Shown in pieces: positions 10,045-58,206 of a stretch of DNA of 64,000 nucleotides. A program made the position numbers and the translations under genes. This stretch comes from Kudoa neothunni. Taxonomy: Eukaryota; Animalia; Cnidaria. Within the stretch, counting starts at the first letter, position 1, and the number at the start of each line of letters is the position of its first letter. The notes below the pieces were generated by a model. It saw only the letters and a program-made list of their open reading frames with translations, was not told where the DNA came from and ran no database searches. The stretch is taken from contig OZ199838.1 in assembly GCA_964304625.1 (NCBI GenBank), positions 10,929,607 through 10,993,606 of the forward strand, given 5' to 3'.

Positions 10045-13000
10045 TTATTAAAATAATAGAATGGAATAATAAAAAAAGTAACTAAACGTCCAATCATTAT
10101 ATTTTATAATTCGTAATTGAAATCCTTGGAGCATCTAGAGTAAAGGGCGATACCAATAACCACAAAAATTGAAGAAACAATTGGTACCAGAGCATAAATA
10201 CTAAAAAAGATATAAATAATAGATTTTCATATTTACATGTATAGGCCAATAGATCTATTCTAAGATTACACATGAATAAGTTTAATGAAATTTACGAGCT
10301 GATATTCTTCGCAATTGTATGTTCTTGTATCTGTTTGCTACCTACTCATAGTTGGAAATTTATATGTATAGATTATATATATTTTACTAAATACGAAATA
10401 AAGTACATCTATACAAAATTTTTCATCATTTACCCTTTTTCAACTTTTCTTATAAATTTTTTAACAAAATCTTCTATTTCGATGTTTTCGTGTTCACTTC
10501 TTATTTGTTGCTCCTCTAATAATGATTCAATATTTTTTTCATTTTTCATTAATTACTATTAAAATTATAATATTAATAAATATAATAATTTTTATTACCC
10601 TGTTGTTTTTGATAATTTTGAATCTATTTTTTTAAAATAAATATTAATATCTGATACATATACAATATTAGAAATGTTTTTTACATGGAATATCATATTC
10701 TTTATAGGTAGAATAATCTTTCACTTTCACTGATAATACATAATCACTTTCTTTAGACAATCCACTTATATCGATGACACATCCATTGGCTGAACAGTCC
10801 TCGTCATCGTTACACCAAGTTATCGTTGATAAAATATTAGCAGCAATTGTTTTCTCCTTCAGTATGAATGGGCATCTACTATTCTGTGATTTATCGTCAA
10901 AATCCACACGAAATTTCAATTCGATTCCGTCTTTATAACTATAACTAACCGTTGTTTCCTCATCCACTAAATCCTGCTATATTTTTTAAATGTTCAATTT
11001 GTCATACCTGTGGTAATATCATAGGTTTTAATCTTCTTCCCATCGGATGGTTCCACAATCAATTTGTAGATCTTTCCTAATTCTAGATTTATTATTTTGA
11101 ACTCATTATTGCATTTGTTTTCGCAAATTCCCATTCCCTCACAAGTCGCCATATATTTTTTATCCGCATCATCTTGTTTATCAAGATAGACTCTACAAAT
11201 TGGTAGTGAGTCATCCTCTCGAAATGGTGTGACTGTAGCCATTCCATTTTTAATTGTTGCACTTGTATTATTAACAGATAGATCGTCCCCCTCTTCTAAA
11301 CTTATTTAGACGTTGAGATGTTTAAGTTAAATTTTACTTGTTCTAAATATCATCTGTTTTACGTAATTTCCGTTGAAACCAAGGTTAGTAATTGTAACTG
11401 AAATCACATAATTTGTACCAGCATCCAAAGAACCAATTGAATGAGAAGCTTCACAATTATTTTGTGTATGTTTAGTCCTCGTTTTGTTGGGAATAATATT
11501 CGCTTTATATGTTGTTATTGTGCATACTGGAGAATTAGTGTCAGCTTTAATATGGTTGTAAGAATCGAGTCCAGTAATTGTTACTCCTGCTTTTGTAATG
11601 TCACTTAATGTGAAGCCATTATCGTTTCCTATAATGTCTTAGTGACAAATATGATAAATTCGTTTACTTTTGAAGTATTGTTTGAATTTTCTGTTATCAA
11701 ATCTTCTCTGTACGATTACACCAAGTTTTTCTCGTCCTTCCGTCAAAATAATGATGCCGTCTTGACAGAGTTGGTAGCAACCATCAACAACATTTCCACA
11801 TTTATTCAAAATAACATCTTCTTTGTCTGCACCCACATTATCAACTTCAAATACTTTGATATGACACATTTCATTATTGTAAGGGCCAGGTGAGAAATGT
11901 ATTTTAACTTGTTTATTACTTTCACTAACGCCGCTAATGGAAAATATGATGTCAGACTTCAAAGGAATAGTTTCGCGCAAGTATGTATTATTAGTGTAAT
12001 AGATTATTCCTGGCCACATATGTGTGGAATCAACTTTGTAATAACTTATGAATCTATCTACTGGCAGGGAGGCAGACATAGTCGATATGGTGTCGGAATA
12101 ATTTAATAAACTTAGGCCATCTTCCTGAGTTTTGCTGAATTCATCGTTACTACCATCAACTCGAATATCCCATTTTGTCAATGAGTTAGATATATAGGAA
12201 AATTTAATTTTTCCTTCTTTATGACTCAAAGTATACATTTGTTTATGTTTGTAATCTATCAAATAAAATTATTATTTGAAAGATATTCGAATATATTATT
12301 AAATATGAATAATTTCAATATTTATAAATAGAAATGCATGAGTATTAATTATTAAATACCCATTTTAATTGAAAAGACATTCTTTTTTTTGCATGTTTTG
12401 GCTTCTGCATCATTTGAGCCATAACATACCAATACGTATCGATCCATTTTTGAGTTGATGAATCCAATTTCATCACCTCTAGAATTACAATCCATCAAGC
12501 AAAAGTCATTATCTGTGCCTACGGAGCACGTAGGTTTTACGAACGCATTGTTATCAAAATTTGATAATTTAACAGCACATTTAGCACCAGTTGGAAATTG
12601 AGTCAGAGAAATCGAGAATTTATCATGTACGTCGTTTTCTTTTGAAACAAACCCCTGTTTTAATTCTCCAAGTCTGGAAAATGCTACAGAAGTATTAAAT
12701 TTGTATTATCACCTAACTTTACCGGGAATAGCAATCTTAAATGGTCCTGATTTTCCTTTAACATATATCATTAATCGGTAGTTATATTTTTTGTTGTATA
12801 AATTGGTTTCAAATTTTATATCGTTGCATTTTTTAATTTGGGGATCATCATTACGAGCATCATCACAGCCAACACACGACTGTATTATTTCAGTCGTTGA
12901 TGCTAAATAAAATTCTTATAGAAATATAATAAATTTGATTACTGTCATTTCCTCCGTGTTTATATAATTGATAATAGCAATTAGTATTACTAGCATCTGA

Positions 13001-16000
13001 AATAGCGTCAACAGGATTTATAACAAGAAGATTTTTTTTCGATTCAGTGGAAATTTTAAATGAAATGCTCTCACCATCTATTAATTATTTATAAAAATTT
13101 AATTAATATTTTATACTTGTTTTTTGACCATTTATAATTTTATTCTTATAATTTCCGGTTGGTACTATTTTTATATCATACGCGACTCCAGAGTAAAGCC
13201 CAATGATGGTGAATGTAGAACTGCATTTATTTACGCATAACTTATTTTCTGAACATATAACTGGATGATAATCGTTCATTGAATCTTTTTCTTTCACGTA
13301 AATAATACATGTGCTTGATTGTATTGCTGAACCTGGAGTGAATGTGAATCCGTCTTTAGTAGGAGACACCGAGGTTTCTCCAGTTGATAGATCAGTTAAT
13401 TCAGCTTAACAAAATGTAATATAGTAACCATTATTCCAAAAAATACTTATTTTATGATAAAAGTATTTTCTTGGAATGTAGTGAGGTATATTTTTTATAG
13501 TTACCATGACATCGTTAGGTAATTCAGCTGGACTCGGTGTTATTTCTATATCAGAGAATGTACATAAAGGGGAAGTAACATCTGTCCTTCCACTCTCACT
13601 CACCAATGGAGCATACGTATTCCAGGATTTCAACGAACACGAAATCGGATTTGAACTTGAAACAGATTGCCCATCATCATCTTTATCGTCATCATCAAGG
13701 TTAACTTTGATCTTTTGCCCGTTAGTCGTCGGAGATGTATCATTTCCATGTTTAACTAAATGGGCTTATTGTTTTAAAATATTTATATTATTACGTAAAT
13801 ATATGTTGTTTTGATAGCCAATAATAGGAACCATTCCTAGTTTAAGAACACGTATTTTGACTGCTTTTACATCTGTTGGTATATTTCCAAAAGTGATTTG
13901 ACTACAAATACTGTAAAAGCAATTATCTCTGTTTTCACATCTGTTCGAAAAAAATTGGTTTGAGGATGAGTAAGTAGCGTCTATCCATTCAAAAGTGCAC
14001 ATTTCAGAGGGATTTTCATTAGTTAATTTAATAGTGAGCTTTTGATCTACTTCGTCAACAGCCAGTTCATAGTAGAATCTACTGAAAACTGGTGCGTGGG
14101 TTTTTACAAATGTATTGTCATAAAAATAATGAAAATCAAAATGTTTAGGACAATCTATGTGATAGTCTTCTACTAGTTCGTCAAACTGTACTGAATAATG
14201 ACCAAAAGTACAAGGAGTTCTTGTGTCGTCTTTTACTTCAGATACTTCGTTTTGTATTTCTGTATCCTTGTAAAATTTACATGACTGCTCACATTTATCC
14301 GATCCCAGTTGTAATTCGTCTCCGCTGAGCTTTGCTACGTAGCTAATGTCCTCGTAATAATCTTAACAAAATTATATTTAATCATTTTATATTATATATT
14401 ACCTATGTAGTACGAAAAAACCTTCCCTTTTTTGAATTTGACCGTTTTTGAGAAGGAAGACGGACTTTGATGATCTTCACGATTTTCGTCAGTGGCTTCT
14501 TCAGTGGTTGTTTTGGTAACATCATAAGTGACAGATATATAATTTAATATATTTTCAAGATTGTGACTAATGGTGAATTCTGTATTAAGTTGTTTACATT
14601 TTATTGTATTTTCTTTTCCATTTACAAGAGCAATTTCATATCCCAATAGTTCAGAGTTAGATCTTTGAACTGTACACTCTTGTTCAGTCCCCTCTATCAC
14701 TCCATCCTTAAACTTAACCTTGTACTCACCAGTTGCTCTGTCGTATTTTAGAATCATGTCGTCCTTCGATTCTTCCACATCTCCTAAAAAAATTAAATTT
14801 ATATTTCATGTATTATATAACTTGTCACTTCTGCCTCAGCTGGGTTAGCTTTATCTTTATTTATCACAACAATCTTATAAAGAACATCAACGCTAAAGTC
14901 TACCCATTGAATATCTAGTGTCTTTTCGGATGTTGCGGTTTTTACATTATTTTTGCAATCGCCATCCAAACAATCAATAATTATTTTATTGGATGCTGAT
15001 TCATAGATAAAATAAGACCACAAATTTCCAAAAGTTTCGGCTGGTGAAATTGTCATTGTAAACGTAACTTTTTTCGCCTCAGTATTACTCTGAGAAACAG
15101 TGAGTGTTGATCCATTAGCTATTTGAAATTAAAAGATTATTCCGTAACTATAATATTACTTTCTACTCCTTCACTTTCAGCACACGTGTATCCTCTTGAG
15201 CATATGGTGATTTTATATGTTGTTTTTGGATCCAGATTAACAATATTAAAATGACCACTGCAAGAACTGAAGCAGAATTTTTTTTCCTCGCCATATTCGC
15301 AAGTCGCGGGAAATTTTGCGAGATCATCATCGCCAAATGAATAGTAAAGTTCACATTGTGCGCCCGAATTATCGTTATTTGAAAAAAGATCAGTTGGCGT
15401 TAAGCTTAATTTCGTAGTTTCACTGTCGTTCTTTGAAAGATTTATTGTCCTAGTCTGTTTGAACTTCTTCCCTATTTTAAATTAGAAAATGATCGATCCC
15501 TATATCTACCTTTTGTTTTGAAATAAATATATCTGTGATAAAATTTTACTTCGGGCGAATCTAACGTGTTGAGTCCTCTTATTTTAAGTTTCAAAACATA
15601 CTCCGTTAATGAATTAAGATTTGTGATTGTGATTGAGCCAAAAGAGGTGCACCCTCCGGTTCCATCGCATGTCGGATTGCCACCGCCATTTTCAATTCCA
15701 AGGTATTTTCTTATAATTGTCATTTCTATGGTTACAGTCTCAGTTGGCGTGATAGAGTCTTCATTTTTATTCAAATCGGATAGATTAATAGTGGCTTGGT
15801 TATTATCACCGATGGTTACACTAGGTTCAATAGTGACAACTAAATAAATGCTAATAAAAAGTTTACAAAAACAAAATTTTACACGTCACGATCTGAATAA
15901 ATTCTTTATACGTTATTTTTACTAGCGGCACTACAATGACTTGAGCAAACTTCAATTCTAAGTCATGATATAATGTTGCTTTGTGGCATGGTTGAAGGCA

Positions 16001-17660
16001 AGGTCCAGCGTTGTTCATATCCGAACAGCGAGAGGAAAAATGCGATTCACTTATTTCTTTTATTCCAAAATAACATATTTTAGATGGTTCCGGGTTTTGA
16101 ATTTTTATAGTGTAAAAGTTTTTCCCACCCGTGGTATGTTTTGATCCAGTTGCAACAAACCAGTTTTCATGAGGTTTTTTCGGATTCAAAAAAATTTGGG
16201 GAGATCGGTTGGTGAACTCGACAATTGACGTAGTTTGATATGATAATGAGCTTAGTCTGAGAGTTTTCTCAACAAAGTTTTCATTGTTTGATGACACAGT
16301 GGTTTCATTGCTGCCATCGACAATAGACTTGAACCCATCGTTTATTTTTCTTTTAACACCGATAGTAAATTCATTAGCTGTCTTTTTCGCAGTCAGTTTC
16401 GTTTTTATATAAATATCTATATAGTACTTTTAAACGTGTACTATTTAAATTGAAAATACCTTTAACAGTATAGACTCTCTTGTTAATGCATTTTTTTACA
16501 TCTTTGTCGTCTTTTCCTTGACACCATCTTACGAACTTTATTTTACTTATATCTGCCACACTTATCTTAAATTCAAGCCTTTTACATTTATAAAGGCACA
16601 TGTTTGATCCTTGGACCACATTCGAACCTATAATGGTACTGCTGCATGCTGAAAACGCTTTTAAGGCTGAATCGTCTCCATCGTAGTACTGAAGTGCGCA
16701 TTTTCTGTTACTATTTTCGATATGGTAGCCGGAGATGGAAAACTTATATTTATCTTCACTACTTAAGAAAGTTAATTTCATAATATTATTGTCTATATTT
16801 TCAACAACATTTTCATCGAGGAGGACTAAAAAAATGAATAGCACAATAATTCTCCGAAGAAATTACCCCTAAGAATAAAAATAAATTCAATCACAACGTA
16901 AACCAGTTCCATTTTATTTTCATTAATAGTTTTAATCGTTAGGCGAAAAATTATATCTACTTACTGTTTCAATACTCAATTGTTTTATTTAAAACAGAGT
17001 AACATTAATCTTATTAAATAACTAGATAATGACTTTTAATTAATTTCATCAATATCAATAAAAAATAATTATTTTAATTTATTTTCTTTACTTCAAAAAT
17101 AATAGCGGAATTTGATTTTTTTATTTAATATTTTAAATATGGGTCGATTTTTATCATTTATTAAAGTCAACACAATTCTACAAAAAGATTCATTTGGTCA
17201 TTCGTAGAAGTGATTTTGACAATTTCTCTGAAATTGTCAATTAAAAGACACTCATTAGAAATAAACTGTTAAATTATTCATAGTAACAATAGAATATATC
17301 CATGTGTAATATTTTTGTTTGTGATTAAAATAAATAATACTATTTGATATGTTATATTCATAAAGATTGGTAAATACCCATTCAATTAATGACCTTCGAC
17401 CTATATCGTTGAGGATACTACGACCTAAAAAGATATTAATAAGTATATTTATCGTATGTAAATATGTTAAATTAAACAAAATTAATATATCATTGTTTCA
17501 AATTATGTTATGAATTTATAAATAACAAATAGATAACAAATTTTAGGCGTAGCATTATTAGCAGGTTATAATAATGTTAATAACCTGTATTTAATTAATT
17601 AAATTCGATATACAATAAAATAGCGCTAATGTATAATTTTCTGTTTAAGCTTTAAATAAC
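10045..17660 (-). repeat. Arm A of a ~7.6-kb inverted segmental duplication (partner 44010-51722)
   Basis: Reverse complement aligns collinearly with 44010-51722; the ORF track also shows mirror-image peptides (e.g. 11639-12262 vs 49506-50129, 10668-10967 vs 50801-51100). Confidence 0.97.
10104..16912 (-). CDS. Gene A: large multi-exon type I membrane protein with ~15 Cys-rich, partly FN3-like extracellular modules
   Basis: ATG at 16912 opens a hydrophobic signal-like exon (MELVYVVIEFIFILR). About 20 exons are separated by tiny GT-AG introns. Modules share C-x(12-16)-C-x(4-6)-C-x3-C followed by an FN3-like F-x-I-x-x-L-x(4-5)-Y-x-I/L-x-I/V ending. Last exon IYALVPIVSSIFVVIGIALYSRCSKDFNYEL* is a TM helix plus short tail; stop at 10104-10106. 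Confidence 0.8.
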
Positions 17661-17831
17661 ACTTTTCTACTTATAATAAAATTACAATAATAGATATCGT
17701 TGTTGTCTAAATATATAAAATTAATTTTATTAATTTAAAAAAGTCGATTCTATATATTATTTTAGATTACCTGTACAGACATGGGTCGGTTTTACGCTAT
17801 TTTTAAAAGCTACAGTATGATAATTTGACTT

Positions 17832-17834
<3 letters not shown>

Positions 17835-17872
<38 letters not shown>
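17835..17872. repeat. (TA)19 microsatellite
   Basis: Directly visible TA dinucleotide run. Confidence 0.95.
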
Positions 17873-17877
<5 letters not shown>

Positions 17878-24157: not shown

Positions 24158-24338
24158 ACATCTGATATATCTCATATAAACTACAGTGTTGGCAGAAACT
24201 ATCCCCACATTATATAAAACAACCAAATTTTATGTCTAGATAATCATTACTATTATCAACATAACACACATTTGACTGCAGCACTATTTGTTGTACACTT
24301 TGTGATTTGACTCTTTTTTGCCGCTCGCCACCCATACA

Positions 24339-27300
24339 TCACTGTTGGTGTCCTAGATAGTCCACTGAGTTTCCAGTTGTTGCGATATCTATAGTTCCTG
24401 GTGATTTTTCCCAGTCGATTTTAAGTAGATGTTGTGAGGCTAATTCGGTCGCGCGATCATATAGCATTTTTGAGGTGAGGACACCATCGTTGGATGCAAA
24501 CGCTGAAGCTTGCCAAGAAATAGCCAATTTAGAAATCTCTCGACCGGAGAGTCCTGAAGTTGTTTCGTTGAGATTATTCAGATGAGAGTCTAAATTGTCT
24601 AAGATATTTTGTTCTACTTTAATGCTCCTAAAATATGATAAAGTGCATTAGCGTTAATAAACGTAGTTGTTTTTGTTGATAACGATACTTTTCTTCCGTT
24701 ATGTATTTGTTGAAATAGTATTTGAGAAGACGTCTTCTTTCGGCCTCCTTTGGTAGTGTAAATCCAACCAACTCATCAATACGATCGTTAACTGCTCTAT
24801 CGAGTTGGCTGGGCTGATTAGTTGCCAATACGAGCATAAAACTAAAAATTAATCTTAACACAACGAAAAACTATTGTGTAATATATATTACTTTTTAGAA
24901 GCTTCGCCAGTATTATAGAGAAAAGCATTCAGCGCATTTCTCACATCTTCGCTGATAGCTTCCTACAACAGCAGTCAGTCGCATAACTGAATCCAACAAT
25001 CAAATAAAGTGCTGTTATACTTTATTTCTTTTCTTTAAAAATGCATCAGCTTCATCGATAAAAAGCAATAATCTTAAGTAATCAGAAAATGAATTAATCT
25101 TGATGTCGAAAACACATATTTTAATATTACCCCTTTTTTGGAAGTTGAAGCCCATCGAAACACATTATGTACTGCGGTGACAGCATCCTTGCCCAACGGA
25201 GCCACATCTCCTCCTGTCATTATTGCATAATCCATTCCTACTGTGTGAGCCATACTCTGAGAGATTTTGAGTTGATTAAGAAACTAATAATAAAATAACA
25301 TACTTTGGCAAATAGAGTTTTTCCTGTTCCAGGAGGTCCATAAAACAGTAGATTTCTATAGTAACCATTGTTGTGTCTGGTATTCACAGTTGAAATAGAT
25401 ATTCGTATAAGTTGCTCTTCAATTCCTTTCTGGTGAATTAATTTTAAAATGGTTCAGAAAGCATTATTTCGACTAATACTATCCATTGTTTCAAAAAATC
25501 AATATATGTACATTTAATTTTTGGGGGGAAAATAAAAATAAATTATACAATTATACAGATGACTTGATAAGGAAAATTTGAATATTAAATGTAGACAGTC
25601 AATAAATTTTGGAGTCTCAAAAAATTCCTCAACCAATTTTTTAATGAAATTTATTGTCGTTAGGGCTAGTTTTAGTTAGTATTGTAATAACACATATTCA
25701 TCGGCATATTTTGCGCCCATATGTTGTAATAAAAAGTCGTTATTAGTAATTTTAAAATATAAAAACATAAAATAATGATATGTTACGATAAAAACTACCG
25801 TATATAGTATATACTCGAGTATGAGTCGCATTTTTTCAAAAACAAAGCTTCGAAATCAGCATGCGATGTATACAAGTGATACAAGATTAGAAATAAAGAT
25901 AGTTGATAGCAAAGTACATAATTTATACGAAATAAATTAATTTTCTTATTCAAATGTAATGTTCGTGGGAAATGAATTAAATGGATGCGGGAGGGATTGG
26001 CAAAAAAGACAGAAATAGGAAATTTTAAAAGACCTCTATTACCACCTATCGTAGTTGGCTAAGTGAAAAGTTCTTGGGACTTAATAAGTTTAAAAATGAT
26101 TCAAAGATCATTCAAGAAATGGGCATATCAAACTCAATGAATGGGAGCGAAGATGATATACTTTGGAAGGCAGAAAAAATAGAAAATAACGATAAAGAGG
26201 TTAATGAGATCTACGACGACACTGTGACTGCTAAGAAAAAAACATGTCGACTTGAAAAGAGCGACTCTTCTTCCGATTTAATCGGCGAAAACCATTAACA
26301 ATGGAAACTTATTTTTTGAGAATACTAACATTATATGAACTTAAAATAAACATTTTATTTTTGTATACAATAAGTTTTATTTTTTACATTAATTTAAATT
26401 AAAACATCTAATCTGTGAAAAATTTGTAACTTGAAAACTTTTCTTTTCAGGGTGCGACTAATACACGAACAGCCAAAATCACGAAAAATTATTCCAACCC
26501 CATTGCGATTTATACTTGAGTATATATGATACATCAAATATTATATTATATCAATATAAATGCAGTAAATATAAAAGAGCACACTCACAAATTAAAGTGC
26601 TAGCTGATACGACTAAAGTGTATATAATTTATTTAATATTACGAAAACAAATTTTAAATGATAATAATTTAAAATGAAATAAGGAACTTACATCTAAGAA
26701 AATCCCACGCATCACCTTCTCTTCAGCCTTAGAGTTTTTGGATAGATATGCACCAAAAAACTGTTAACAAGACAATAATCAATGTGATCGAATAAACTAA
26801 ATATACACTAGGCAAATCTCGCCTATTGAAACGAGAGGTCTCTCTAATGAGTGATGGTTTCCCTAGGCGAGACTCCACGTAACTAAACGCGCATATTTAA
26901 ATAAAACAGTGAGAAGTATGTAGGAGACTAGTCACAATTTACCTTGAAACCAGGTTAACAGTGGCTTTTATTGATTTCAACCCAAAGGACATACCCAAAA
27001 TTGCGCCACACTAATAAACCCAATGTTTTTTGTCATACACCAATATAAACCTTACCAACATTGAAACTTGATAAGGATTATTGATAAATGTGGAGAAGCC
27101 AGTTCCTATAATATCTGAACTTGTTCTAGAAAAAATGTGAAGAAATATGTGGTTTGTATAATATTGTTTATATTACTTTACAATATCTAGAATTGTAGTT
27201 CTATATTCAGATAATTTGGTGTGAATAGCCTCTAGTTCTATGTCTCTGTTTTCACGACGCATTTTCCCTCTTTATCAACAATGCATCAATCAAAAAAAAC

Positions 27301-28191
27301 AATTGATTACTGTGCTTCCACTTTAGCTTTGACAACAGCCATATCATTATCCTTTCGTAGTTTGGCCTTATAGTCGATAGTGGCTATAATTAAAGGAGAC
27401 AAGGTTTGTTTAATAATTAGGCTAACAGTGGTTAATACCTTTTCTCATGGCCTCTTGTTTTTTCACAGATTCCTCTTGGCGAGCCAAATTCTGCTCATTC
27501 ATTCTTTGCTGCAAACATTCTCATAAAAAAAGCTCACTCTGATATGAAAATATTTACTTGTTTCGCCAATTGATCATCCTGTCTTTTCCTGGAAAGTTGG
27601 TCTTGGTAATTGGCACGCTAGAATATATATTAAACACCGCTGCCGATTTACCACCAATAATTAACTTGTTTATATTGTTGTGTTTCGGCTTCTAATGTTC
27701 TGCGTTTTTCCTCGTGATCAACCCTGACTTTTTCCACTTGCAACTGCTCCATGTATGCTTCACGTTCCTGTTGAATCATAAAGTTAACATTTAAATAATA
27801 TTAATGGCATACCTTCAATTTGGTCTTATACTCCTCTTGTTTGGTGGTCTCTTGTATTCTTGCCAAATCTAACGCATCCCTTGCATGCTCTAGACAAAAA
27901 TCAAATTCGGCTTAATGTATTGATATGTGCACAAACTTGATTTTTCGAGATCTTTCGCAGCTTTGGCAGCTCTCTCCAATCCAGTTGGATCAAAATTTGA
28001 CCATTGTGACACAGAAGGGACCTGTTTGGTTTGACTACCTGATCCTGAATTCTTCCCATCGGAATTTATTTTATCCGACGAAACATCTAATAATATTCTA
28101 AATTACGTTATAATTATTAACTACCATTTGGTGGGAACGATGGAGGAATATTTGGGGTTCGATTCCCTGTCAAACTTGAAAGCCAAGACAT
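24339..28191 (-). CDS. ATAD3: ATPase family AAA domain-containing protein 3 (mitochondrial)
   Basis: Starts MSWLSSL. Contains [56 protein letters not shown], Walker [16 protein letters not shown] (~25305-25350), [13 protein letters not shown], Walker [34 protein letters not shown] and [16 protein letters not shown]. Many short introns plus a ~1.26-kb intron (~25430-26690). Confidence 0.96.
25796..26531 (+). mobile_element. Internally deleted Tc2/pogo-type element inside the long ATAD3 intron
   Basis: Imperfect TIRs TA|CCGTATATA..CTCGAGTATGAGTCGCA and TGCGATTTATACTTGAGTATATATG. The residual peptide [15 protein letters not shown] is the typical pogo (POGK-like) transposase C-terminus. Confidence 0.7.
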
Positions 28192-40570: not shown

Positions 40571-42026
40571 CGCGGAGTGTGAATTGTTTTTAAAATCCAA
40601 ATAAAGACGAACAAACTTGCCTTGGTTTGTTTGGCATGAATTCTGGTGCAATGAATGTCCTACACATACGAACTGTCCCAAGGATCGACGTCTTACGTTT
40701 CTATAGGTACTCAGCAAGTTTCCAAGTTGCGGAGTAATTATCACAGGTGACGCTCCTACCTGAGTAATGTAAATGGTCAATGAGCTCAGTTACAACTTTA
40801 AGACTCAAGGTTTTCTCTCTGTTTTCATTTTGTTGGCCAATGTACGGTATGATGTTGGAAACATAGCGTGTATCGCTGTCGCATACCATCCAAAAACTTT
40901 ATACCATCTCGGATGGTTTTTGGGCATGTAAATCAAAAACTTCGATCCCCCTCTGAATGGATACAACTGTTCATCAACAGTGATATTAGATCCAGGAATA
41001 GAGCTTGTCTTACAAATTTTTACAAAAGATTCGAATACATTTTTTTGGTAAAAAGACGTCATCGGACCTAACATTTTTTTCCCTAACCAATATTTATCGA
41101 ATCTAAGACAGAGCAGAAATCTTTTTGAAACGGTCACACGACATTGTTGCACGAAACAATAGTGTATCATGAATTTCGTGCCATAAAATTTTGGTATCTT
41201 CATTATTAGACTTGTTTGCTCCAGAAAGTAATAAAAGTTCCGAACAAGCTTGAAATTCTCTAAAATCTAAAGGTTTCCATCTCTCACCAAGAGCCTCTAA
41301 ATCTTTTTTGTTTGTGTAGAGAATAATTTCTTCTATTATTTCCAATTTCATGAAGTGATAAAAGGTGCTCTCTGGCGTTGAAGTATTAATATCATCAATA
41401 GATGTTCCAATCAGTTTATTGTCATCAATAATATTATTGCGGAAGTTCTTCCCAGTTTAGATTGTGACGCCCCAAACAAGTGATTTATCCTTTGAGATAT
41501 AAACATTTTTGTTGCAGGTGGCGTTATCACTTATCTGGGTCGACTCTTCGTTGTTTTTGTTGTTGTTATTGGAGTTGATTATCATATTTAAATTGTTTTC
41601 AGGTTGAATTTATGAAATATTAAATATCCTTAATTATAAACACAGCTTACAGTTTAAACCAAATTCTTCGTTTGATTCATTATTAGCCAAATAATCTATC
41701 AGTTCTATGGAAAAAAACACTTTCGGTGTCTGAAGATGAACAATCAAATGAAAAATCAGGACTCTGCCATTATGTATCGTGCCGCGATTTTTAGGGTTAA
41801 TTCAAATCACAATCGTCATAAACGTATTAAATAATGTTAACGCGAAGCCTAGTTTGGGCCATTAAATATGGGGGAAAATTTTTTCTCTTCAAATTCTGCG
41901 CATGAATAGAAAAAATGATTTCACCAGGTTACTTAAAATATGGACTTCAAAAATCCTCAATTTAAGTTACTTTAAGCCATTTAATACGCAGGTGGGTTCG
42001 TAGAGCCCACGGTTGTCGATTAAGGG
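40570..42026 (-). mobile_element. 5' part of a second piggyBac transposon (pseudogenised)
   Basis: Terminus TTTA|CCCTTAATCGACAACCGTGGG on the minus strand at 42026. Motifs IILYTNKK, FRATMSCDRF, LRFD, ITVDEQLYPFRG...IYMPK, VCDSDTRYV and GRSVTCDNY are spread over several frames. The 3' end is missing. Confidence 0.88.
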
Positions 42027-42077
42027 TAAATACGCACATTATTTATTTATAAATTAGTGTCATCCTATTAATTCTCA

Positions 42078-44009: not shown

Positions 44010-47000
44010 AATTTAAAGATTTCACAGAAAATTATGCACGAGCGCTATTGTATTTTATTTCGAATTTAATTAATTAAATACACGATATTAACATTATTAT
44101 AACATGTAAATAATAATATTTATGCCTAAAAGATTTTATCACTTTGTTATTTATGAATTCTCAACCCATGTAATTTAGAAACTATGAGCTAATTTATTTA
44201 TTTTATCCAAAAATACTTAAATCAGATAAATATACTTATTAATATCTTTTTAAGTCGTAGTATCCTCAACGATATAGGTCGAAGGTCATTAATTGAATGG
44301 GTATTTACCAATCTTTATGAATATAACATATCAAATAGTATTATTTATTTTAATCACAAACAAAAATATTACACATGGATATATTCTATTGTTACTATGA
44401 ATAATTTAACAGTTTATTTCTAATGAGTGTCTTTTAATTGACAATTTCAGAGAAATTGTCAAAATCACTTCTACGAATGACCAAATGAATCTTTTTGTAG
44501 AATTGTGTTGACTTTAATAAATGATAAAAATCGACCCCATATTTAAAATATTTAAATAAAAAAATCAAATTCCGCTATTATTTTTGAAGTAAAGGAAAAT
44601 AAATTAAAATAATTATTTTTTATTGATATTGATGAAATTAATTAAAAGTCATTATCTAGTTATTTAATAAGATTATGTTACTCTGTTTTAAATAAAACAA
44701 TTGAGTATTGAAACAGTAAGTAGATATAATTTTTCGCCTAACGATTAAACTATTAATGAAAATAAAAATGGAACTGGTTTACGTTGTGATTGAATTTATT
44801 TTTATTCTTAGGGGTAATTTCTTCCGGAGAATTATTGTGCTATTTCATTTTTTTTAGTCCTCCTCGATGAAAATGTTGTTGAAAATATAGACAATAATAT
44901 TATGAAATTAACTTTCTTAAGTAGTGAAGATAAATATAAGTTTTCCATCTCCGGCTACCATATCGAAAATAGTAACAGAAAATGCGCACTTCAGTACTAC
45001 GATGGAGACGATTCAGCCTTAAAAGCGTTTTCCAGCATGCAGCAGTACCATATAGGTTCGAATGTGGTCCAAGGATCAAACATGTGCCTTTATAAATGTA
45101 AAAGGCTTGAATTTAAGATAAGTGTGGCAGATATAAGTAAAATAAAGTTCGTAAGATGGTGTCAAGGAAAAGACGACAAAGATGTAAAAAAATGCATTAA
45201 CAAGAGAGTCTATACTGTTAAAGGTATTTTCCAATTTAATAGTACACGTTTAAAAGTACTATATAGATATTATTATAAAAACGAAACTGACTGCGAAAAA
45301 GACAGCTAATGAATTTACTATCGGTGTTAAAAGAAAAATAAACGATGGGTTCAAGTCTATTGTCGATGGCAGCAATGAAACCACTGTGTCATCAAACAAT
45401 GAAACTTTGTTGAGAAAACTCTCAGACTAAGCTCATTATCATATCAAACTACGTCAATTGTCGAGTTCACCAACCGATCTCCCCAAATTTTTTTGAATCC
45501 GAAAAAAACCTCATGAAAACTGGTTTGTTGCAACTGGATCAAAACATACCACGGGTGGGGAAAAACTTTTTACACTATAAAAATTCAAAACCCGGAACCA
45601 TCTAAAATATGTTATTTTGGAATAAAAGAAATAAGTGAATCGCATTTTTTCCTCTCGCTGTTCGGATATGAACAACGCTGGAACCTTGCCTTCAACCATG
45701 CCACAAAGCAACATTATATCATGACTTAGAATTGAAGTTTGCTCAAGTCATTGTAGTGCCGCTAGTAAAAAATAACGTATAAAGAATTTATTCAGATCGT
45801 GACGTGTAAAATTTTTGTTTTTGTAAACTTTTTATTAGCATTTATTTAGTTGTCACTATTGAACCTAGTGTAACCATCGGTGATAATAACCAAGCCACTA
45901 TTAATCTATCCGATTTGAATAAAAATGAAGGTGTTAATAAAGTTAACCGAGGCTGCAACCATCGAAATGAAACTTATAAGCAAATATCTTGGAATAGAAA
46001 GTGGCGGCGTCAAGCCAACATGCTCCGGAACCAATGGGTGCTCCACTTCTGGCTCAATCACAATCACAAATCTTAATTCGTTAACAGAGTATGTATTGAA
46101 ACTTAAAATAAGAGGACTCAACACGTTAGATTCGCCCGAAGTAAAATTTTATCACAGATATATTTATTTCAAAACAAAAGGTAGATATAGAAAGTGGTCG
46201 TTTTCTAATTTAAAATAGGGAAGAAGTTCAAAGACACTAAACAAATTAATCCTTCAAAAAAACGGCAATGAACCTACGAAATTAAGTTTAAACGCCAACT
46301 GATCTCCTCTCAAATGAAGATAATTCAGATGCACAATGTGAACTTACTACTCAGTTAACGAGAAAGGTTCCGCGAAATTTCCTGCTACTTGTGAAGTTAA
46401 TAATCAGAAGAAATTCTGCTTTAATACATGCAGTGGTTATTTTAGTATTGTTAACCCTGAATCCAAAAAACAATATATAAAATTACCATATGCACCAAAG
46501 GATACACATGTGCTGAAAGTGAAGGAGTAGAAAGTAATATAGATATAAAAAATATTTTAATTTCAATAGCTAGTGGAGCAATACTCACTGTTTCTCAGAA
46601 TAGTACCGAGGCTCAATGGGTTACTTTTAAAATGACAGTTTCACCAAACTGAAATAGTTGGAAATTTTTGGTCTTATTTTATCTATGAACGGGTATCTAA
46701 AAAAATAGTGTTATTGATTGTTTGGATGGCAACTGCAAATATAAAGTAACAACTACAACAGAAGGAGGAAATACATTAAATATTCAATGGGCAGATCTTA
46801 ACATTGACGTCTTTTTATAAAATTGTTGTTATAAATAGAGATAAAGCTAATCCAGCTGAGGCAGAAATAACAAGTTGTATAATAAATTTAATATAAATTT
46901 AATTTTTGTAGGAAGAGATGAAACAAAAATGGATTACATGATTTTAAGATATGGTACAAGAGCGAATGCATACAATGTTATGTTTAATGAAGGAGTGATC

Positions 47001-50000
47001 GAGAGAACTGGAAAAGATTGCACAGTCAGAAGATCAAACCCTGAACTATCGGGCTACGAGAACACTGATTAAATCGCAAAGAAAATAAAAAATGTGAAGA
47101 ACTTAATATAAAATTTACTATTAGTCACAAACCTGGAAATGAATTAAATTATATATCTGTTACTTATGAAGATAGCAAGAAGATCACTTAAAAAGGTCTA
47201 CTCAAAAGGATAGTGGTGATGGTGGTCTTAAAGATGATCAAAGTTCGTCTTTAACGTTACCATCCGCAACAACCGAGGAAACTGTCAAATTCAAAAAAAG
47301 GAAAAGGTTTTTTCATATTACATAGGTAATATATAATATAAAATGATTAAATATAATTTTGTTAAGATTATTACGAGGACATTAGCTACGTAGCAAAGCT
47401 CAGCGGAGACGAATTACAACTGGGATCGGATAAATGTGAGCAGTCATGTAAATTTTACAAGGATACAGAAATACAAAACGAAGTATCTGAAGTAAAAGAC
47501 GACACAAGAACTCTTGTACTTTTGGTCATTATTCAGTACAGTTTGACGAACTAGTAGAAGACTATCACATAGATTGTCCTAAACATTTTGATTTTCATTA
47601 TTTTTATGACAATACATTTGTAAAAACCCACGCACCAGTTTTCAGTAGATTCTACTATGAACCTGGCTGTTGACGAAGTAGATCAAAAGCTCACTATTAA
47701 ATTAACTAATGAAAATCCCTCTTGAAATGTGCACTTTTGAATGGATAGACGCTACTTACTCATCCTCAAAACCAATTTTTTTCGAACAGATGTGAAAACA
47801 GAGATAATTGCTTTTACAGTATTTGTAGTCAAATCACTTTTGGAAATATACCAACAGATGTAAAAGCAGTCAAAATACGTGTTCTTAAACTAGGAATGGT
47901 TCCTATTATTGGCTATCAAAACAACATATATTTACGTAATAATATAAATATTTTAAAACAATAAGCCCATTTAGTTAAACATGGAAATGATACATCTCCC
48001 GCAACTAACAATAACAAGATCAAAGTTAATATTGGCGCTAACAATAAAGATGAAGATGGGAAATCTGTTAACGGAGTCACTTACGACCGCATGCTCATTG
48101 AAGATCTGGAATACGTATGCTCCATTGGTGAGTGAGAGTGGAAGGACAGATGTTACTTCCCCCTTTATGTACATTCTCCGATATAGAAATAACACCGAGT
48201 CCAGCTGAATTTACCTAACGATGTCATGGGTCCAGCTGAATTACCTAACGATGTCATGGTAACTATAAAAAATATACCTCATTATAACCCAAGAAAATAT
48301 TTCTACCATAGAATAAGTATTTTTTAAAATAATGGTTACTATATTACATTTTGTTAAGCTGAATTAACTGATCTATCAACTGGAGGAATCTCTGTGGCGT
48401 CGAAATCAGACGGATTCGAATTCACTCCGAGTTCATTAGCACAATCAATCACATGTACTATTTATGTGAAAGAAAAATATTCAAGGAATGGTTATTATCC
48501 AGCTATTTGCTCAGAAAATAAATTATGCGTAAATAAATGCAGTTCTACATTCACCATCATTGGGCTTTACGCTGGAGTCGCGTATGATATAAAAATAGTA
48601 CCAACCGGAAAATATAAGGATAAAGTTATAAATGGTCAAAAAACAGGTATAAATATTAATTAAATTTTTAATTAAAAATTAATAGATGGTGAGGGTATTT
48701 CATTTAAAATTTCAACTGAATCTAAGAAAAACCTTCTTATTATAAATAATATTGGCGCTATTACTGATATTAGTGATATAAATTGCTATTATCAATTTTA
48801 TAGACACGAAGGAGATGATAGTAATTAAATTTGTTAAATTACGATAAAATTTTATTTAGCTTCGCCGACTGAAATAATACAATCCTGTATTGGATGTGAT
48901 GTTAATGATGATGGTGATAATGATCCCCGAATCAAAAAATGCGGCGATATAAAATTACAAGACGATTTATACAACAAAAAATATAACTACCGATTAATGA
49001 TATATGTTAAAGGAAAATCAGGACCATTTAAAATTGCTATTCCCGGTAAAGTTGGGTGATAATACAAATTTAATATTTCTCTAGCATTCTCCAGGCATGG
49101 AGAATTAAAACAGGTAATTGTTTCAAAAGGAAACAACGCATATGATAAATTCTCCATTTCGATGTCCCAATTTCCAGACAACAACAGATGCGTTGTTAAA
49201 TTATCAAATTTTGATAACATTGCATTCGTAAAACCGACGTGCTCTTTAGGCACAGATAATGACTTTTGCTTGATGGATTGTAATTCTAGAGGTGATGAAA
49301 TTGGATTCATCAACTCAAAAATGGATCGATACGTATTGGTATGTTATGGCTCAAATGATACAGAAGCCAAAACATGCAAAAAAAAGAATGTATTTTCAAT
49401 TAAAATGGGTAATTAATAATTAATACTCATGCATTTCTATTTATAAATATTGAAATTATTCATATTTAATAATATATTCGAATATCTTTCAAATAATAAT
49501 TTTATTTGATAGATTACAAACATAAACAAATGTATACTTTGAGTCATTCAGAAGGAAAAATTAAATTTTCCTATACATCTAACTCATTGACAAATTGGAA
49601 GATTACAGTTGATGGTAAAAACGATGAATTCAGCAAAGATCAAAATAATGTTTTGAGTCTACCAAGTTATTCCGACACCATATCGACTATGTCTGCCTCC
49701 CTGCCAGTAGATAGATTCATAAGTTATTACAAAATTGATTCCACACATATGTGGCCAGGAATAATCTATTACACTAATAATACATACTTGCATGAAACTA
49801 TTCCTTTGAAGTCTGACATCATATTTTCCATTAGCGGCGTTAGTGCAAGTAATAAACAAGTTAAAATACACTTCTCGCCTGGCCCTTACAATAATGAAAT
49901 GTGTCATATCAAAGTATTTGAAGTTGATAATGTGGGTGCAGACAAAGAAGATATTATTTTGAATAAATGTGGAAATATTGTTGATGGTTGCTACCAACTC

Positions 50001-51722
50001 TGTCAAGACGGCATCATTATTTTGACGGAAGGACGAGAAAAACTTGGTGTAATCGTACAGAGAAGATTTGATAACAGAAAATTCAAACAATACTTCAAAA
50101 GTAAACGAATTTATCATATTTGTCACTAAGACATTATAGGAAACGATAATGGCTTCACATTAAGTGACATTACAAAAGCAGGAGTAACAATTACTGGACT
50201 CGATTCTTACAACCATATTAAAGCTGACACTAATTCTCCAGTATGCACAATAACAACATATAAAGCGAATATTATTCCCAACAAAACGAGGACTAAACAT
50301 ACACAAAATAATTGTGAAGCTTCTCATTCAATTGGTTCTTTGGATGCTGGTACAAATTATGTGATTTCAGTTACAATTACTAACCTTGGTTTCAACGGAA
50401 ATTACGTAAAACAGATGATATTTAGAACAAGTAAAATTTAACTTAAACATCTCAACGTCTAAATAAGTTTAGAAGAGGGGGACGATCTATCTGTTAATAA
50501 TACAAGTGCAACAATTAAAAATGGAATGGCTACAGTCACACCATTTCGAGAGGATGACTCACTACCAATTTGTAGAGTCTATCTTGATAAACAAGATGAT
50601 GCGGATAAAAAATATATGGCGACTTGTGAGGGAATGGGAATTTGCGAAAACAAATGCAATAATGAGTTCAAAATAATAAATCTAGAATTAGGAAAGACCT
50701 ACAAATTGATTGTGGAACCATCCGATGGGAAGAAGATTAAAACCTATGATATTACCACAGGTATGACAAATTGAACATTTAAAAAATATAGCAGGATTTA
50801 GTGGATGAGGAAACAACGGTTAGTTATAGTTATAAAGACGGAATCGAATTGAAATTTCGTGTGAATTTTAACGATAAATCACAGAATAGTAGATGCCCAT
50901 TCATACTGAAGGAGAAAACAATTGCTGCTAATATTTTATCAACGGTAACTTGGTGTAACGATGACGAGGACTGTTCAGCCAATGGATGTGTCATCGATAT
51001 AAGTGGATTGTCTAAAGAAAGTGATTATGTATTATCAGTGAAAGTGAAAGATTATTCTACCTATAAAGAATATGATATTCCATGTAAAAAACATTTCTAA
51101 TATTGTATATGTATCAGATATTAATATTTATTTAAAAAAATAGATTCAAAATTATCAAAAACAACAGGGTAATGAAAATTATTATATTTATTAATATTAT
51201 AATTTTAATAGTAATTAATGAAAAATGAAAAAAATATTGAATCATTATTAGAGGAGCAACGAATAAGAAGTGAACACGAAAACATCGAAATAGAAGATTT
51301 TGTAAAAAAATTCATAAGAAAAGTTGAAAAAGGGTAAATGATGAAAAATTTTGTATAGATGTACTTTATTTCGTATTTAGTAAAATATATATAATCTATA
51401 CATATAAATTTCCAACTATGAGTAGGTAGAAAACAGAAACAAGAACATACAATTGCGAAGAATATCAGCTCGTAAATTTCATTAAACTTATTCATGTGTA
51501 ATCTTAGAATAGATCTATTGGCCTATACATGTAAATATGAAAATCTATTATTTATATCTTTTTTAGTATTTATGCTCTGGTACCAATTGTTTCTTCAATT
51601 TTTGTGGTTATTGGTATCGCCCTTTACTCTAGATGCTCCAAGGATTTCAATTACGAATTATAAAATATAATGATTGGACGTTTAGTTACTTTTTTTATTA
51701 TTCCATTCTAATATTTTAATAA
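44010..51722 (+). repeat. Arm B of the ~7.6-kb inverted segmental duplication (partner 10045-17660)
   Basis: Collinear reverse-complement match to arm A; near-identity begins at ~44225 (equivalent to ~17453) and ends at ~51722 (equivalent to ~10045). Confidence 0.97.
44768..51663 (+). CDS. Gene B: paralog of gene A (Cys-rich FN3-like type I membrane protein) with apparent frameshifts in the 5' half
   Basis: Same ATG exon (44768), exon order and terminal TM exon (stop 51661-51663) as gene A. Numerous 1-nt indels between ~44800 and ~48250 and a 30-bp tandem duplication at 48199-48259 break the frame, so this is either a pseudogene or sequencing error. Confidence 0.7.
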
Positions 51723-54860: not shown

Positions 54861-57800
54861 ATGCTTCCAATGATTGGATGTATATGGGTATTTTTTCTTT
54901 TTACATCAAGTAAAATTAAATTATATAAAAATAAGTCTTATCCATTTTTAGCTGAATGTTTGAAATATATTTATACAAACGTTGATCATCTTGCTGACAG
55001 CCGTCTGATGTTTACCGAACTTGCAGACTATGTGTCTACAGGCACCTTCATTACCGCTACTGAAGGTAATGAAAGTACGGAAAAAATAATTAAAGAAGAT
55101 TGTGAGAACATTAATCGTCATCGTGAATGTGAATTGGGCACAACTCATGTGGATATACACGGAACTGGTGATTTATTTTTAAAAGTTATTGAAAATGGAA
55201 AGAAAAAAGTATACAGAATAAACTCTCGTAAAAAATTTTAAAAATTCATATATCTGTTAAATTTAATCATAGAACCCATTCAAAATAATAAAAAGGTGAT
55301 AATTTCGGTCAAGGATCACTTTATCCAAATTAATAAAACTGATAACACTATGAAAGAAAATCCATACTTAGAAATTTTAATGAACAATAAAGTTTTGAAA
55401 TCTACAAAACATGGAAGTGTATCTTCAATGGATACACAAAAAAAGACTATTTCTTTCGAAATAGGAAAGATTGGAACGGAAGATGCAATTTATGAGGTTA
55501 TACACGATCCAACATTACCAACGTATCAATTTAGTTCTGTATTCTCCTACGTGGATCGAACTAATGATTACAAAGTTGAGGGTAGATTAAGAAACGATGG
55601 AAATGATGAAACGTTTTATAATTTTTATCCATATAAAGATGATTTATGTTTATATGAGATGAAAAGTAATAAACGTGGTTCTACATACATTAATGTGTGT
55701 GGAAATGTTAAATGTATCAACTTCTGTAGTGATTTTCACTTCAGAAAAGTTCTTCCGGATGGTTACCAAATGAAAAACATAAAGGTAACACTTTCAAAAA
55801 CAGGCAAAACAAATGAAGTTTCTATTCCACGTAAAAATAACATATTTTACATGATGTAGTTTAATTTTTTAGCTCATAAAAGTTTTCACTCCATTTGTGG
55901 TGCTCGCTGGTTTAGTCTTTCAAATGGAGGGAAAATTGAGCAATGGGTAGATACAGGAAATGATTGCAATAGATTTAATGTCAAGCCATTTGACTACAAA
56001 AGTACACGATTGCCCTTCAAAAAATCCGGAGACCTCTGTTCTAGTGAGAAGGTTGTTCCAGGAAATTTTATTATTGAATATCTACCCCAATCAGACAAAT
56101 TCGTTTATATTTGTGAACTAAGTATTTTATTACAATGATTCAATTTTATTATTACTTTGATAGAAAAAAGATGGTTTCATTATGAGATAATAGAAGGTGT
56201 GAATATGATTCACATTTTTCATCACGATGTGCATTTTATTAGTAGTAACGCAAAATCGAAACAATCAATTGCATCAGGAGAAGAAACTATGTGTAGAGTG
56301 ATGATTTCAACACACGCAGATTTGAATTATGTAGCTGCGAATTGTGACTCATACGGATCATTGTGTTACGATCGTTGTGATGGTACCTTTGATGTGATCG
56401 GATTAAAGTCAAATGTGAAATACTTCATAAAAATTGAATCATTGGGATATTATTCCGATTTTAAATTTACTGGAACTAAGTCTTTGAAAAGTATAATATA
56501 TAGTTGAAAATAATTAATTATTTTTTTAGACGATTTTAGTCCAGAAATAAGATTTAATCAAAATGGCGGCTTGAGACAAATAGTTTTGCAGTTCAATCAT
56601 GTGAGCCAGTCTGAAATAACCAATGGATTATCTTGCCTGATTGTAATGAGAGAAATGATTTCCACTTCAAGCACCAAATATTTCAAAATATGTGGAGAAA
56701 ATATTTACTGTGTTCTACCTTGCAACGATATGGTTCATCAAGTTCCGTCAAACAAAGATTACATCATATATTCGTTAAAAGTTCTAGGAATGATGGATGA
56801 ATTCATTGATCATCAGAATATTTGTAAGGCTCATCAAATTATTATAAATCATGAGTTTAATAACCAATTTTTTAGATTATTCAAATAAAAATATCCAGCC
56901 TAACGCAGTTAAAAATAAAAATATTATGGTATTCAACAAACTCAAATATACAACGTCATCTAAAACCATTGAGCAAGTAATTCGTGAGTCAATCGAAGAA
57001 TATAATAAAATAAGCTTCAACAAAAAATTCCCGTATAAACAATACAAGAAGAATTCGGGTCCAAACGTTTCTAACATCAAAAAGAAGATGCAATATTCAA
57101 CAACTGAATCAATCAGGAAGAAGCAGCAGAGTGGATTCCTTGTAGCTGAAAATGAAGCTGCCCTACCCCCTTCACCACCTATCGAACCAGATTCACCCTC
57201 TAAACCTGATTCCTCAAGTAAATTTATTTTAACGAATGATTAAAGAAATTTTTTATTTATGGTGATAATTTTCTATATTACTTTTTTAAAATTATTTCTA
57301 ATTTTACTATATTTTTCATCTTATTATTAAATATGATTTATTTTATGGAAGGTATTCCATTTTATATATTATATTTTTTTAAATGAAAGTTTATCCATAT
57401 ATAGCCAGATAAATTATATCTAGTTAATTTCTAAAGTAATTAATGTAATTCAAGAATCTTTATTTGAAATCAGTGGAGTTATTTTATTATTGTAGAAACA
57501 ACCATATTATTTTACTATATTTTTGGATAACTATTAATTATTAAATATTTGGTACAATATTATTCATAAACATGGATTTAGCGGATGACAACCCAGCCAA
57601 CGAACCATCTCCTCCAAATATCATTGTAAGCCCCACTCCAAATATCATTGTGAGCCCCACTCCAAGTATCCCCATTCCACCCGATTCAGGTTGATATACC
57701 CATTTCTATTATAAAAAAATTTTTTGTTTCATCAATATTATATTATATTAAATGTAATAAAATTAAATTATAAAAGAATCAAATGAAGTTTTAACCCAAC

Positions 57801-58206
57801 CACCCGACGAAAAATCAACCACACCTTCATCAAGCACTGCCAATACCGAAAATTCTGTAACTCACGTTCCCCCAGGTGATATTTATTGTTTTAGTTTTTT
57901 CTTAATATTTTCATATAGATAATTATGGTATCTATTAAATTTATATCCAACCTTAGGCGATTTAAATTATTACCTAGATAACAAAAACGAAAATTCAAAA
58001 AGGAATGTTGGGTACCTAAAATACAAGTTAATTTATGGTAAATATTTTTAGGTCGGCCAATATATATGTTGGAATGTAAGTTAAAGAGTTGGATTTGTCT
58101 CTTAGTCTCATTTAGAATCGCAACCATCGTCATTCTAGTCGGTATAGTAATAGGTGTATGGACTATTTATAGAAAGCGACAATGGAAAATTATTCATGAA
58201 ATTTAG
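54861..58206 (+). CDS. Gene C: divergent family member with signal peptide, one five-exon Cys/FN3-like cassette, Pro/Ser/Thr stalk and TM helix
   Basis: Signal exon MLPMIGCIWVFFLFTS. Module MCRVMISTHADLNYVAANCDSYGSLCYDRCDGTFDVIGLKSNVKYFIKIESLG aligns with gene A TCIIYVKEKDSMNDYHPVICSENKLCVNKCSSTFTIIGLYSGVAYDIKIVPTG. Stalk exons at 57582-57689 and 57777-57875. Terminal exon IATIVILVGIVIGVWTIYRKRQWKIIHEI*, stop 58204-58206. Confidence 0.8.
57612..57670 (+). repeat. 24-bp coding tandem repeat (PNIIVSPT x ~2.5) in the gene C stalk
   Basis: CTCCAAATATCATTGTAAGCCCCA / CTCCAAATATCATTGTGAGCCCCA / CTCCAAGTATC. Confidence 0.9.

Follow-up and report, generated by a model that had tools for sequence, protein, structure and literature searches.

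Type I membrane proteins with arrays of fibronectin type III (FN3) domains are already known; usherin and sidekick, which are among them, end in PDZ ligands, and cytokine receptors and CD45 have FN3 domains with conserved cysteines. The Alr proteins of Hydractinia have membrane and secreted splice forms (PMC9546547), and the myxozoan Sphaerospora molnari has VSPs, defined by a cysteine content above 10% and more than five CXC/CXXC motifs (10.64898/2026.02.11.705288). Here, a 64-kb window of the Kudoa neothunni genome (the whole stretch of 64,000 nucleotides that was analysed; contig OZ199838.1, positions 10,929,607 to 10,993,606) is described, which carries three genes, A, B and C, encoding predicted chains of cysteine-bearing, FN3-like modules. 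The assembly, obtained from yellowfin tuna, comprises 40.2 Mb in three chromosomes (N50 12.0 Mb), with ca. 5,300 predicted genes and 46% repeats (PMC12239612). At about even probability, the genes belong to a family of the Kudoa lineage whose single-pass proteins act at the cell surface in adhesion or recognition; this reading is built on DNA gene models, a cassette period, the family size, the FN3 fold of two modules, ratios of nonsynonymous to synonymous substitution (dN/dS) below 1 and a conserved tail. In the literature searched, no description was found of the family, of its six-domain super-repeat or of its size.

The gene models of A, B and C were built from DNA alone, and database searches and fold predictions were run exon by exon. 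The DNA occurs in four sequencing runs only, all from one sample and none recorded as RNA. Gene A models as a type I membrane protein with the following parts:

10104-16912, minus strand: gene A, 22 exons, 1,927 amino acids (aa), with a signal peptide, 18 predicted domains, a stalk of ca. 55 aa, one transmembrane (TM) helix and an 11-aa tail.
16867-16912, minus strand: signal-peptide exon of A (15 aa), with similar exons in 10 paralogues.
14822-16825, minus strand: cassette 1, exons a1 16825-16460, b1 16416-15883 (two domains), c1 15839-15510, d1 15471-15160 and e1 15118-14822.
12723-14783, minus strand: cassette 2, exons a2 14783-14403, b2 14361-13795, c2 13755-13447, d2 13404-13117 and e2, which is split (13077-12943 and 12902-12723).
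10685-12683, minus strand: cassette 3, exons a3 12683-12360, b3 12255-11668, c3 11628-11338, d3 11295-11008 and e3 10966-10685.
10104-10200, minus strand: TM exon of A and tail, ending Y-E-L-stop.

With the predicted splice sites joined, the frame of gene A is open through 1,927 aa, of which the ectodomain takes up 1,840. The GC (guanine plus cytosine) content of the window is 24-37%, and introns are ca. 40 nucleotides (nt) long. All ectodomain introns of A and C are in phase 1 and, with two exceptions, measure 38-45 nt (38-43 nt in A, apart from one of 104 nt after a3; the exception in C is one of 52 nt after e). Owing to the split of e2, cassette 2 has six exons. An earlier note on this DNA had placed the exons of A correctly within ca. 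16 nt and those of C within a few nt; the signal exon, the single TM helix and the short tail without a catalytic domain, which it had also described, were recovered, with tails of 11-12 aa. Two introns begin with GTT rather than GTA/GTG, one starting at 14821 (minus strand) in A, which is kept in B, and one starting at 57690 (plus strand) in C.

The repeat structure of A was recovered with profiles built from 10-30 paralogues per exon. The mean profile-profile score was 32.6 at an offset of five exons and 36.2 at an offset of ten, compared with 12-21 at other offsets, and 0 of 200,000 permutations reached the observed value (p ca. 5e-6). Whole-cassette profiles of A align mutually at 97.6-99.3% probability over 358-549 columns. 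The five-module periodicity proposed for A is borne out by these scores. By module class, profile match probabilities are 96-98% among d1, d2 and d3, 97% for a1 and a3, 63% for c1 and c2, and 49% for b1 and b2; comparison of single sequences pairs d1, d2, d3 and the d module of C (Z 8.7-15.5), as well as a1 with a3 (Z 11.6). Module a2 is strongly diverged from the a1/a3 class: it is devoid of the 'KFSI' motif, has two cysteines and matches a1 at 21% and a3 at 1%. The e modules match one another at merely 1-5%, so that 'e' is a positional label. The likeness between the three runs is thus uneven across module classes, strong for d and for a1/a3 and lacking for e.

The d3 exon, folded from a 51-sequence alignment (predicted local distance difference test, pLDDT, 78), matches the FN3 domain of fibronectin with Z 8.9 and a root-mean-square deviation of 2.5 Å over 81 residues; FN3 domains of tenascin and LAR are matched as well, and the top 50 are all FN3-type entries (Z 7.7-8.9). 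For the long b3 exon, two beta domains are predicted. Its C-terminal half (bC, residues 97-195) aligns mostly with FN3 chains (Z ca. 8, up to 8.3), the model of its N-terminal half (bN) is less certain (pLDDT ca. 65), and the weak Foldseek matches of the exon are to tandem FN3 or Ig pairs. Since the long b exon corresponds to two domains, a cassette has six domains and A has 18; the five-exon cassette of the earlier note is thus right as a period and needs correction as a unit. Through the Leu/Tyr-corner motif of the EF loop, the d profile independently matches titin, fibronectin and Dscam, and L-x4-5-Y is present in all c1, c3, d1-d3, e3 and C-type d sequences and mostly missing in a, b, c2 and e2. 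The conserved strand-B tryptophan of FN3 is absent from the A-type d modules, which contain no tryptophan. When single exons were searched against Pfam, no family passed its cut-off; fn3 (PF00041, gathering score 25 bits) reached 16.6 bits at best, with c3, and was matched weakly by 6 of 51 d modules (best E 0.0095). FN3 membership of the modules is supported by the modelled fold, for d3 and bC, and by the Leu/Tyr corner, and not by the tryptophan or the Pfam score. The remark that FN3 domains rarely carry four conserved cysteines overlooked cytokine receptors and CD45, yet the cysteine positions differ here.

The four-cysteine motif is found in 11 of the 18 domains of A, and one pair of it in another four: c1 and e1 hold just the middle pair, a2 and c2 just the outer pair. 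This paired loss points to disulfides Cys1-Cys4 and Cys2-Cys3 in each domain. The motif had been ascribed to modules (c) and (d) in general, which does not hold for c1, c2 and A's own c3, with two of the four cysteines only. The pattern suggests that every domain but bN descended from one module.

Gene C follows the layout of A, with a signal exon, then five phase-1 exons of which the second is the long one, a stalk, a phase-2 microexon and a TM exon:

54861-58206, plus strand: gene C, ca. 819 aa, with a signal exon, one six-domain cassette, a stalk, a TM helix and a 12-aa tail ending H-E-I.
54952-56823, plus strand: cassette of C, exons 54952-55227, 55273-55830 (two domains), 55873-56121, 56164-56490 and 56530-56823.
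56876-57875, plus strand: stalk of C, with a conserved non-mucin segment in 56876-57217 and Pro/Ser/Thr-rich exons 57582-57689 and 57777-57875.
57919-58206, plus strand: microexons 57919-57927, 57978-58011 and 58052-58075 (phase 2) and TM exon 58116-58206 of C; the exon choice is predicted.

With enlarged profiles, d1-d3 are matched by the d module of C (56164-56490) at 95-97%. The C-terminal half of the long exon of C is closest to bC (class mean 23 vs 9-15; up to 67%), so that profile similarity between C and A is present for these two. The a, bN, c and e modules of C gave no signal above background against the A classes after enlargement of the profiles by six further loci, and the divergent C-type locus L039 offers no bridge from them to A. 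The in-register order of the C modules ranks 11 of 720. C is a one-cassette relative, for which a one-to-one cassette is plausible and only partly provable; the single A-like run that had been reported in C is accordingly visible in two modules and not in the other four. The last 97 aa of the C stalk are 49% Ser/Thr/Pro and fit the description 'mucin-like', which is not true of the first 86 aa, where a non-mucin segment is conserved in homologues outside this genome. L039 is without the mucin stretch.

The genome searched comprised 40,260,978 bases in four pieces, three of them of 17.2, 12.0 and 11.0 Mb. The d3, c2, b2 and b1 exons each match 64-67 loci on all three chromosomes, many of them clustered, giving about 66 three-cassette A-type genes; C-type exons are found at ca. 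10 loci. All three cassettes, in the order of A, are present in 10 of 11 retrieved A-type genes, and the remaining one has cassettes 2 and 3 only within the stretch retrieved. At least 58 further loci match b2 at 24-32% identity, several with a d-like exon ca. 1 kb downstream; as none has a b2-like neighbour 2 kb away, these may be one-cassette genes. The idea that reach from the membrane is set by cassette number, or alternatively by a stalk, makes sense as arithmetic and was not substantiated: cassettes 1, 2 and 3 give matching counts (64-67 loci), no two-cassette gene was seen, and the data describe two fixed classes. A itself also has a stalk (ca. 55 aa, four small exons). A-type and C-type genes would represent separate old subfamilies. 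Against ca. 5,300 genes, at least 66 giant genes, ca. 10 C-type genes and at least 58 weaker relatives thus fall into one family; Kudoa spoils fish flesh, and these genes are concrete candidates for the host-facing surface of the parasite.

Domain by domain, the mean identity between paralogues is ca. 40-72%; the cysteines, the TM helix and the tail are constant. Over eight A-type pairs, dN/dS is 0.32-0.61, without excess in the outermost domain, which indicates coding genes under net purifying selection. For C and its two closest paralogues, values of 0.74-0.88 were obtained (ca. 1 in the outer domains, ca. 0.4-0.6 in d and e). Some loci have stops or split exons; most matches are open.

Among 1.84 billion protein representatives, full-domain matches were limited to eight unnamed open reading frames (ORFs) on AT-rich contigs. 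Six of the eight were traced, to A-type module runs on SRR33849685 and ERZ28624939 contigs and to C-type genes on SRR31175926 contigs (17-20% GC). These contigs are likely from other Kudoa; if they represent other species, as divergence and GC content suggest, the A and C architectures would be older than K. neothunni. The long proteins that topped this search were rejected as relatives, as they match only a Leu/Tyr motif of ca. 25 residues, and a PDB sequence search of b3 gave one designed repeat protein only, judged compositional. Word-indexed homologue searches found one unnamed relative for b3 and none for d, and the ESM Atlas had no usable match for a1 or the stalk exon of C. The family is absent, as are the six-domain super-repeat and its size, from the main text of the K. 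neothunni genome paper (PMC12239612), from the S. molnari papers and from the papers found on myxozoans and fibronectin type III. With no Pfam family passed, eight unnamed full-domain ORFs and no paper found, the view of a lineage-restricted, unrecognised family was upheld within the range of these searches.

The tail of the A-type proteins is conserved: in 30 of 30 paralogues the stop codon follows 11-12 residues after the TM helix, all 30 tails end in [DE]-L, and 27 in Y-[DE]-L. A class II PDZ ligand is hydrophobic-X-hydrophobic at the free C terminus, which the Y-[DE]-L ending resembles and is predicted to fit. Taken together, a long rigid ectodomain, a single helix and a short conserved tail are the build of a surface protein without catalytic activity that is anchored by a scaffold, and a putative adhesin or recognition protein, as suggested in the earlier note, would fit it. 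In the mechanism proposed here for an adhesion or recognition family, one ancestral cysteine-bearing FN3 exon would have been amplified into the five-exon, six-domain cassette, which became triplicated in the A-type (ca. 66 genes) and stayed single, often with a stalk, in the C-type (ca. 10 loci). Once expressed and spliced as predicted, the chain would be routed to the surface by its signal peptide, and two nested disulfides (Cys1-Cys4, Cys2-Cys3) would stiffen each domain. At ca. 3.5 nm per FN3 domain, 18 domains would give a rod of ca. 60 nm if straight, and six domains ca. 20 nm plus the stalk. The outer domains may bind a partner on the host cell or on another parasite cell, while the short, enzyme-less tail with its Y-[DE]-L end may dock to a PDZ scaffold, by which the protein would be clustered and tied to the cytoskeleton; the paralogues would diverge through duplications and the exchange of segments, with net purifying selection acting on them. 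Several points weigh against this reading. The exon chains are models read off genomic DNA; Z values of 8-9 lie just moderately above the level of the common sandwich fold; single-domain fold support covers d3 and the C-terminal half of b3 only, with bN at a pLDDT of ca. 65; the PDZ-like ending is not preserved in all C-type genes; and among 28 a3 modules, only those of A and B have an RGD motif. Integrin binding through RGD was for this last reason rejected as a family trait.

Between cassette 3 and the TM exon of A, two introns are nested:

10623-10600, minus strand: first stalk exon of A.
10516-10599, minus strand: nested intron 1 (84 nt); its inner GT-AG intron of 43 nt splits the donor of the outer one (41 nt) after the first nucleotide.
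10435-10515, minus strand: stalk exon of 27 codons, a probable charged helix, conserved in paralogues.
10342-10434, minus strand: nested intron 2 (93 nt), inner 47 nt, outer 46 nt.
10237-10341, minus strand: small stalk exons, 10341-10296 and an 18-nt phase-2 microexon, 10254-10237.

Both begin with GG and read G[GT...AG]TA...AG, so that removal of the inner intron restores the outer donor. Both are present in 28 of 30 paralogue tails (two matches occur in 0.7% of shuffled tails) and on a divergent contig (L051) from another sequencing run; none was found in C-type stalks. In 25 of the 28, the intervening exon has a length divisible by three; the peptide that it encodes is conserved. Homology of this stalk helix with the stalk segment of C was considered and rejected (0.1% match). 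In their sequence, the nested introns match the [D1,2] stwintron pattern and are stwintron-like. Such stwintrons are described in fungi (PMC9024468, PMC12403724, PMC6616335), where the outer donor is likewise interrupted by the inner GT-AG intron after its first nucleotide; in A, both parts have the normal intron length of this genome. Unlike the fungal ones, those of A belong to an animal, follow each other as a pair and are a fixed feature of a gene family; they are known at the DNA level. If confirmed in RNA, they would extend stwintrons from fungi to an animal.

Gene B is located as follows:

44768-51663, plus strand: gene B, an inverted paralogue of A; a mosaic of blocks of ca. 100% and 81-90% identity.

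The exons of B are 81-100% identical to those of A. In the assembly B is frameshifted, with single-base indels at 45032-48200; three 5' exons have 13 single-base indels, mostly in homopolymers, vs two substitutions. The 11 indels listed in 45502-47768 are all absent, at full depth, from runs of the same sample, and a 31-nt duplication at 48199 is skipped in three same-sample runs. Where contigs are specific to B, they too differ from the assembly by gaps; contigs over blocks shared by A and B could derive from A, but the depth there is ca. 2x that of B-only blocks. With the indels absent from same-sample runs, the frameshifts are probably assembly errors and B is probably intact; a pseudogene was rejected for those indels that reads cover. 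Single frame shifts in four otherwise intact paralogues (L040, L042, L049, L050) may also be assembly errors, which makes pseudogene counts for this family unreliable. Upstream of A (16912-17470) and B (44220-44768), ca. 550 nt are near-identical, and may hold a promoter or reflect recent conversion. Another inverted pair (L042/L043, G000:C3 10.155-10.178 Mb) resembles A and B in that cassette 3 is nearly identical (dS 0-0.07) and cassette 1 diverged (dS 0.2-0.7).

The mosaic identity of both pairs would also be expected of a variant surface coat for immune evasion, in which one or a few paralogues are expressed at a time and reshuffled by gene conversion, as in VSG, var and VSP. This is the foremost of the alternatives, albeit an unlikely one. 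It would agree with ca. 66 paralogues of ca. 40-72% mean identity per domain around constant cysteines, TM helix and tail, with the dN/dS of 0.74-0.88 of C and its two closest paralogues (ca. 1 in the outer domains), and with antigenic variation reported for myxozoans (10.64898/2026.02.11.705288). Against it stand the A-type dN/dS, which is below 1 and not raised in the outermost domain, the position of clusters in the middle of chromosomes as well as close to their ends, and the lack of defining VSP features, as detailed below. Moreover, Kudoa plasmodia grow within muscle fibres, where they are partly shielded from antibody.

The purifying selection suits a structural or junctional role in parasite development (cell-in-cell contacts, spore-valve assembly) with stage-specialised paralogues, to which we attach a somewhat lower probability. 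The fixed 18-domain length over ca. 66 genes and the same module order on a contig of another organism suggest a spacing constraint, and a PDZ-like tail is typical of junction proteins; such a role has no obvious need for dozens of diverging, segment-exchanging paralogues.

A combined reading, in which the cassette segments of a variant surface-antigen system are shuffled by gene conversion and both nested introns serve as a switch, is doubtful. Fungal stwintrons can participate in exon skipping (PMC6616335). A frame check in gene A gave a shorter stalk, still in frame, when an inner donor was joined to a later phase-2 acceptor, and a stop ahead of the TM helix when it was joined to the next exon. 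Under the switch, two-step splicing would give the full stalk, use of the later phase-2 acceptor shorter anchored forms, and one-step joining of the inner donor to the next exon a secreted ectodomain.

Self/non-self recognition between parasite genotypes by homophilic binding, by analogy with Hydractinia Alr1/Alr2, is improbable. Myxozoans are cnidarians, and Alr proteins span the membrane once, have one domain per exon including one that is FN3-like, contain intra-sheet disulfides and are also made as secreted splice forms (PMC9546547), yet no such full-domain match appeared in the search of 1.84 billion representatives. Largely non-functional duplication products of a repeat-rich genome (46% repeats; PMC12239612), for which the loci with stops or split exons might speak, are a very remote prospect and already largely refuted by mostly open matches, dN/dS of 0.3-0.6, the absence of B's breaks from reads, and the recurrence of architecture and nested introns in another organism.

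The remainder of the window holds unrelated features. Two overlapping intronless ORFs of 169 and 264 aa (1629-2899, plus strand) have no Pfam match, the longer also no PDB match, and may be a disrupted insertion from a foreign source, possibly a virus. An AAA ATPase gene resembling ATAD3 (ca. 24300-28100, minus strand) has long introns and PF00004 above cut-off; a transglutaminase-like gene (34193-36236, plus strand) has a core exon that matches PF01841 weakly, with motifs recognisable by eye; and an ADAT1-like gene (36820-38104, minus strand) has an adenosine deaminase domain (PF02137, E 6e-22). Decayed DNA transposons, ISXO2/Merlin-like, piggyBac-like and MULE, lie between and beside the surface genes at 29177-30149, 40808-41456 and 61464-62793. 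Rfam gave no match at gathering scores anywhere in the 64-kb window.

No full-domain match to a described family was found in the exon-by-exon searches, and by the features compared the family falls outside VSPs, cytokine receptors, receptor phosphatases and Alr. With the VSPs of Giardia and S. molnari (10.64898/2026.02.11.705288) it shares a cysteine-containing ectodomain in a parasite multigene family, and A-type proteins have the signal peptide, single TM helix and short conserved tail of that group; A differs by its beta-sandwich fold, a different tail, 3.3% cysteine, one CxxC and no CxC. Class I cytokine receptors and the CD45 ectodomain, several of which are among the fold matches, likewise have FN3 domains with conserved disulfides. 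In A, however, the cysteines are on strand C and around C'-E, not on strands A-B, no WSxWS was found, and the tail of 11 aa is no signalling tail. Hydractinia Alr (PMC9546547), compared here through its published description, is also a cnidarian multigene family of single-pass surface proteins with one domain per exon, divergent Ig-like folds and unusual disulfides. Alr proteins have one to three V-set/I-set domains and one FN3-like domain without Leu/Tyr corner, with immunoreceptor tyrosine-based activation or inhibition motifs (ITAM/ITIM) in the tails of several members, whereas the Kudoa proteins have 6 or 18 domains and an 11-12-aa tail, and the modules folded here are of FN3 type, with a Leu/Tyr corner in d. 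From the FN3-array type I proteins (R3 phosphatases PTPRB/PTPRJ ectodomains, usherin, sidekick), A is set apart by the four-cysteine motif, d modules without strand-B tryptophan, the six-domain super-repeat and dozens of paralogues, and by a lack of any catalytic or long cytoplasmic domain; the stop 11-12 residues after the TM helix in 30 of 30 tails leaves no room for the cytoplasmic phosphatase domain of R3 receptors, and similarity is confined to ca. 25 residues around the Leu/Tyr motif. What A has in common with these arrays is the signal peptide, a long FN3 chain, a single TM helix, phase-1 module exons, and the EF-loop Leu and Tyr corner in c1, c3, d and e3 modules.

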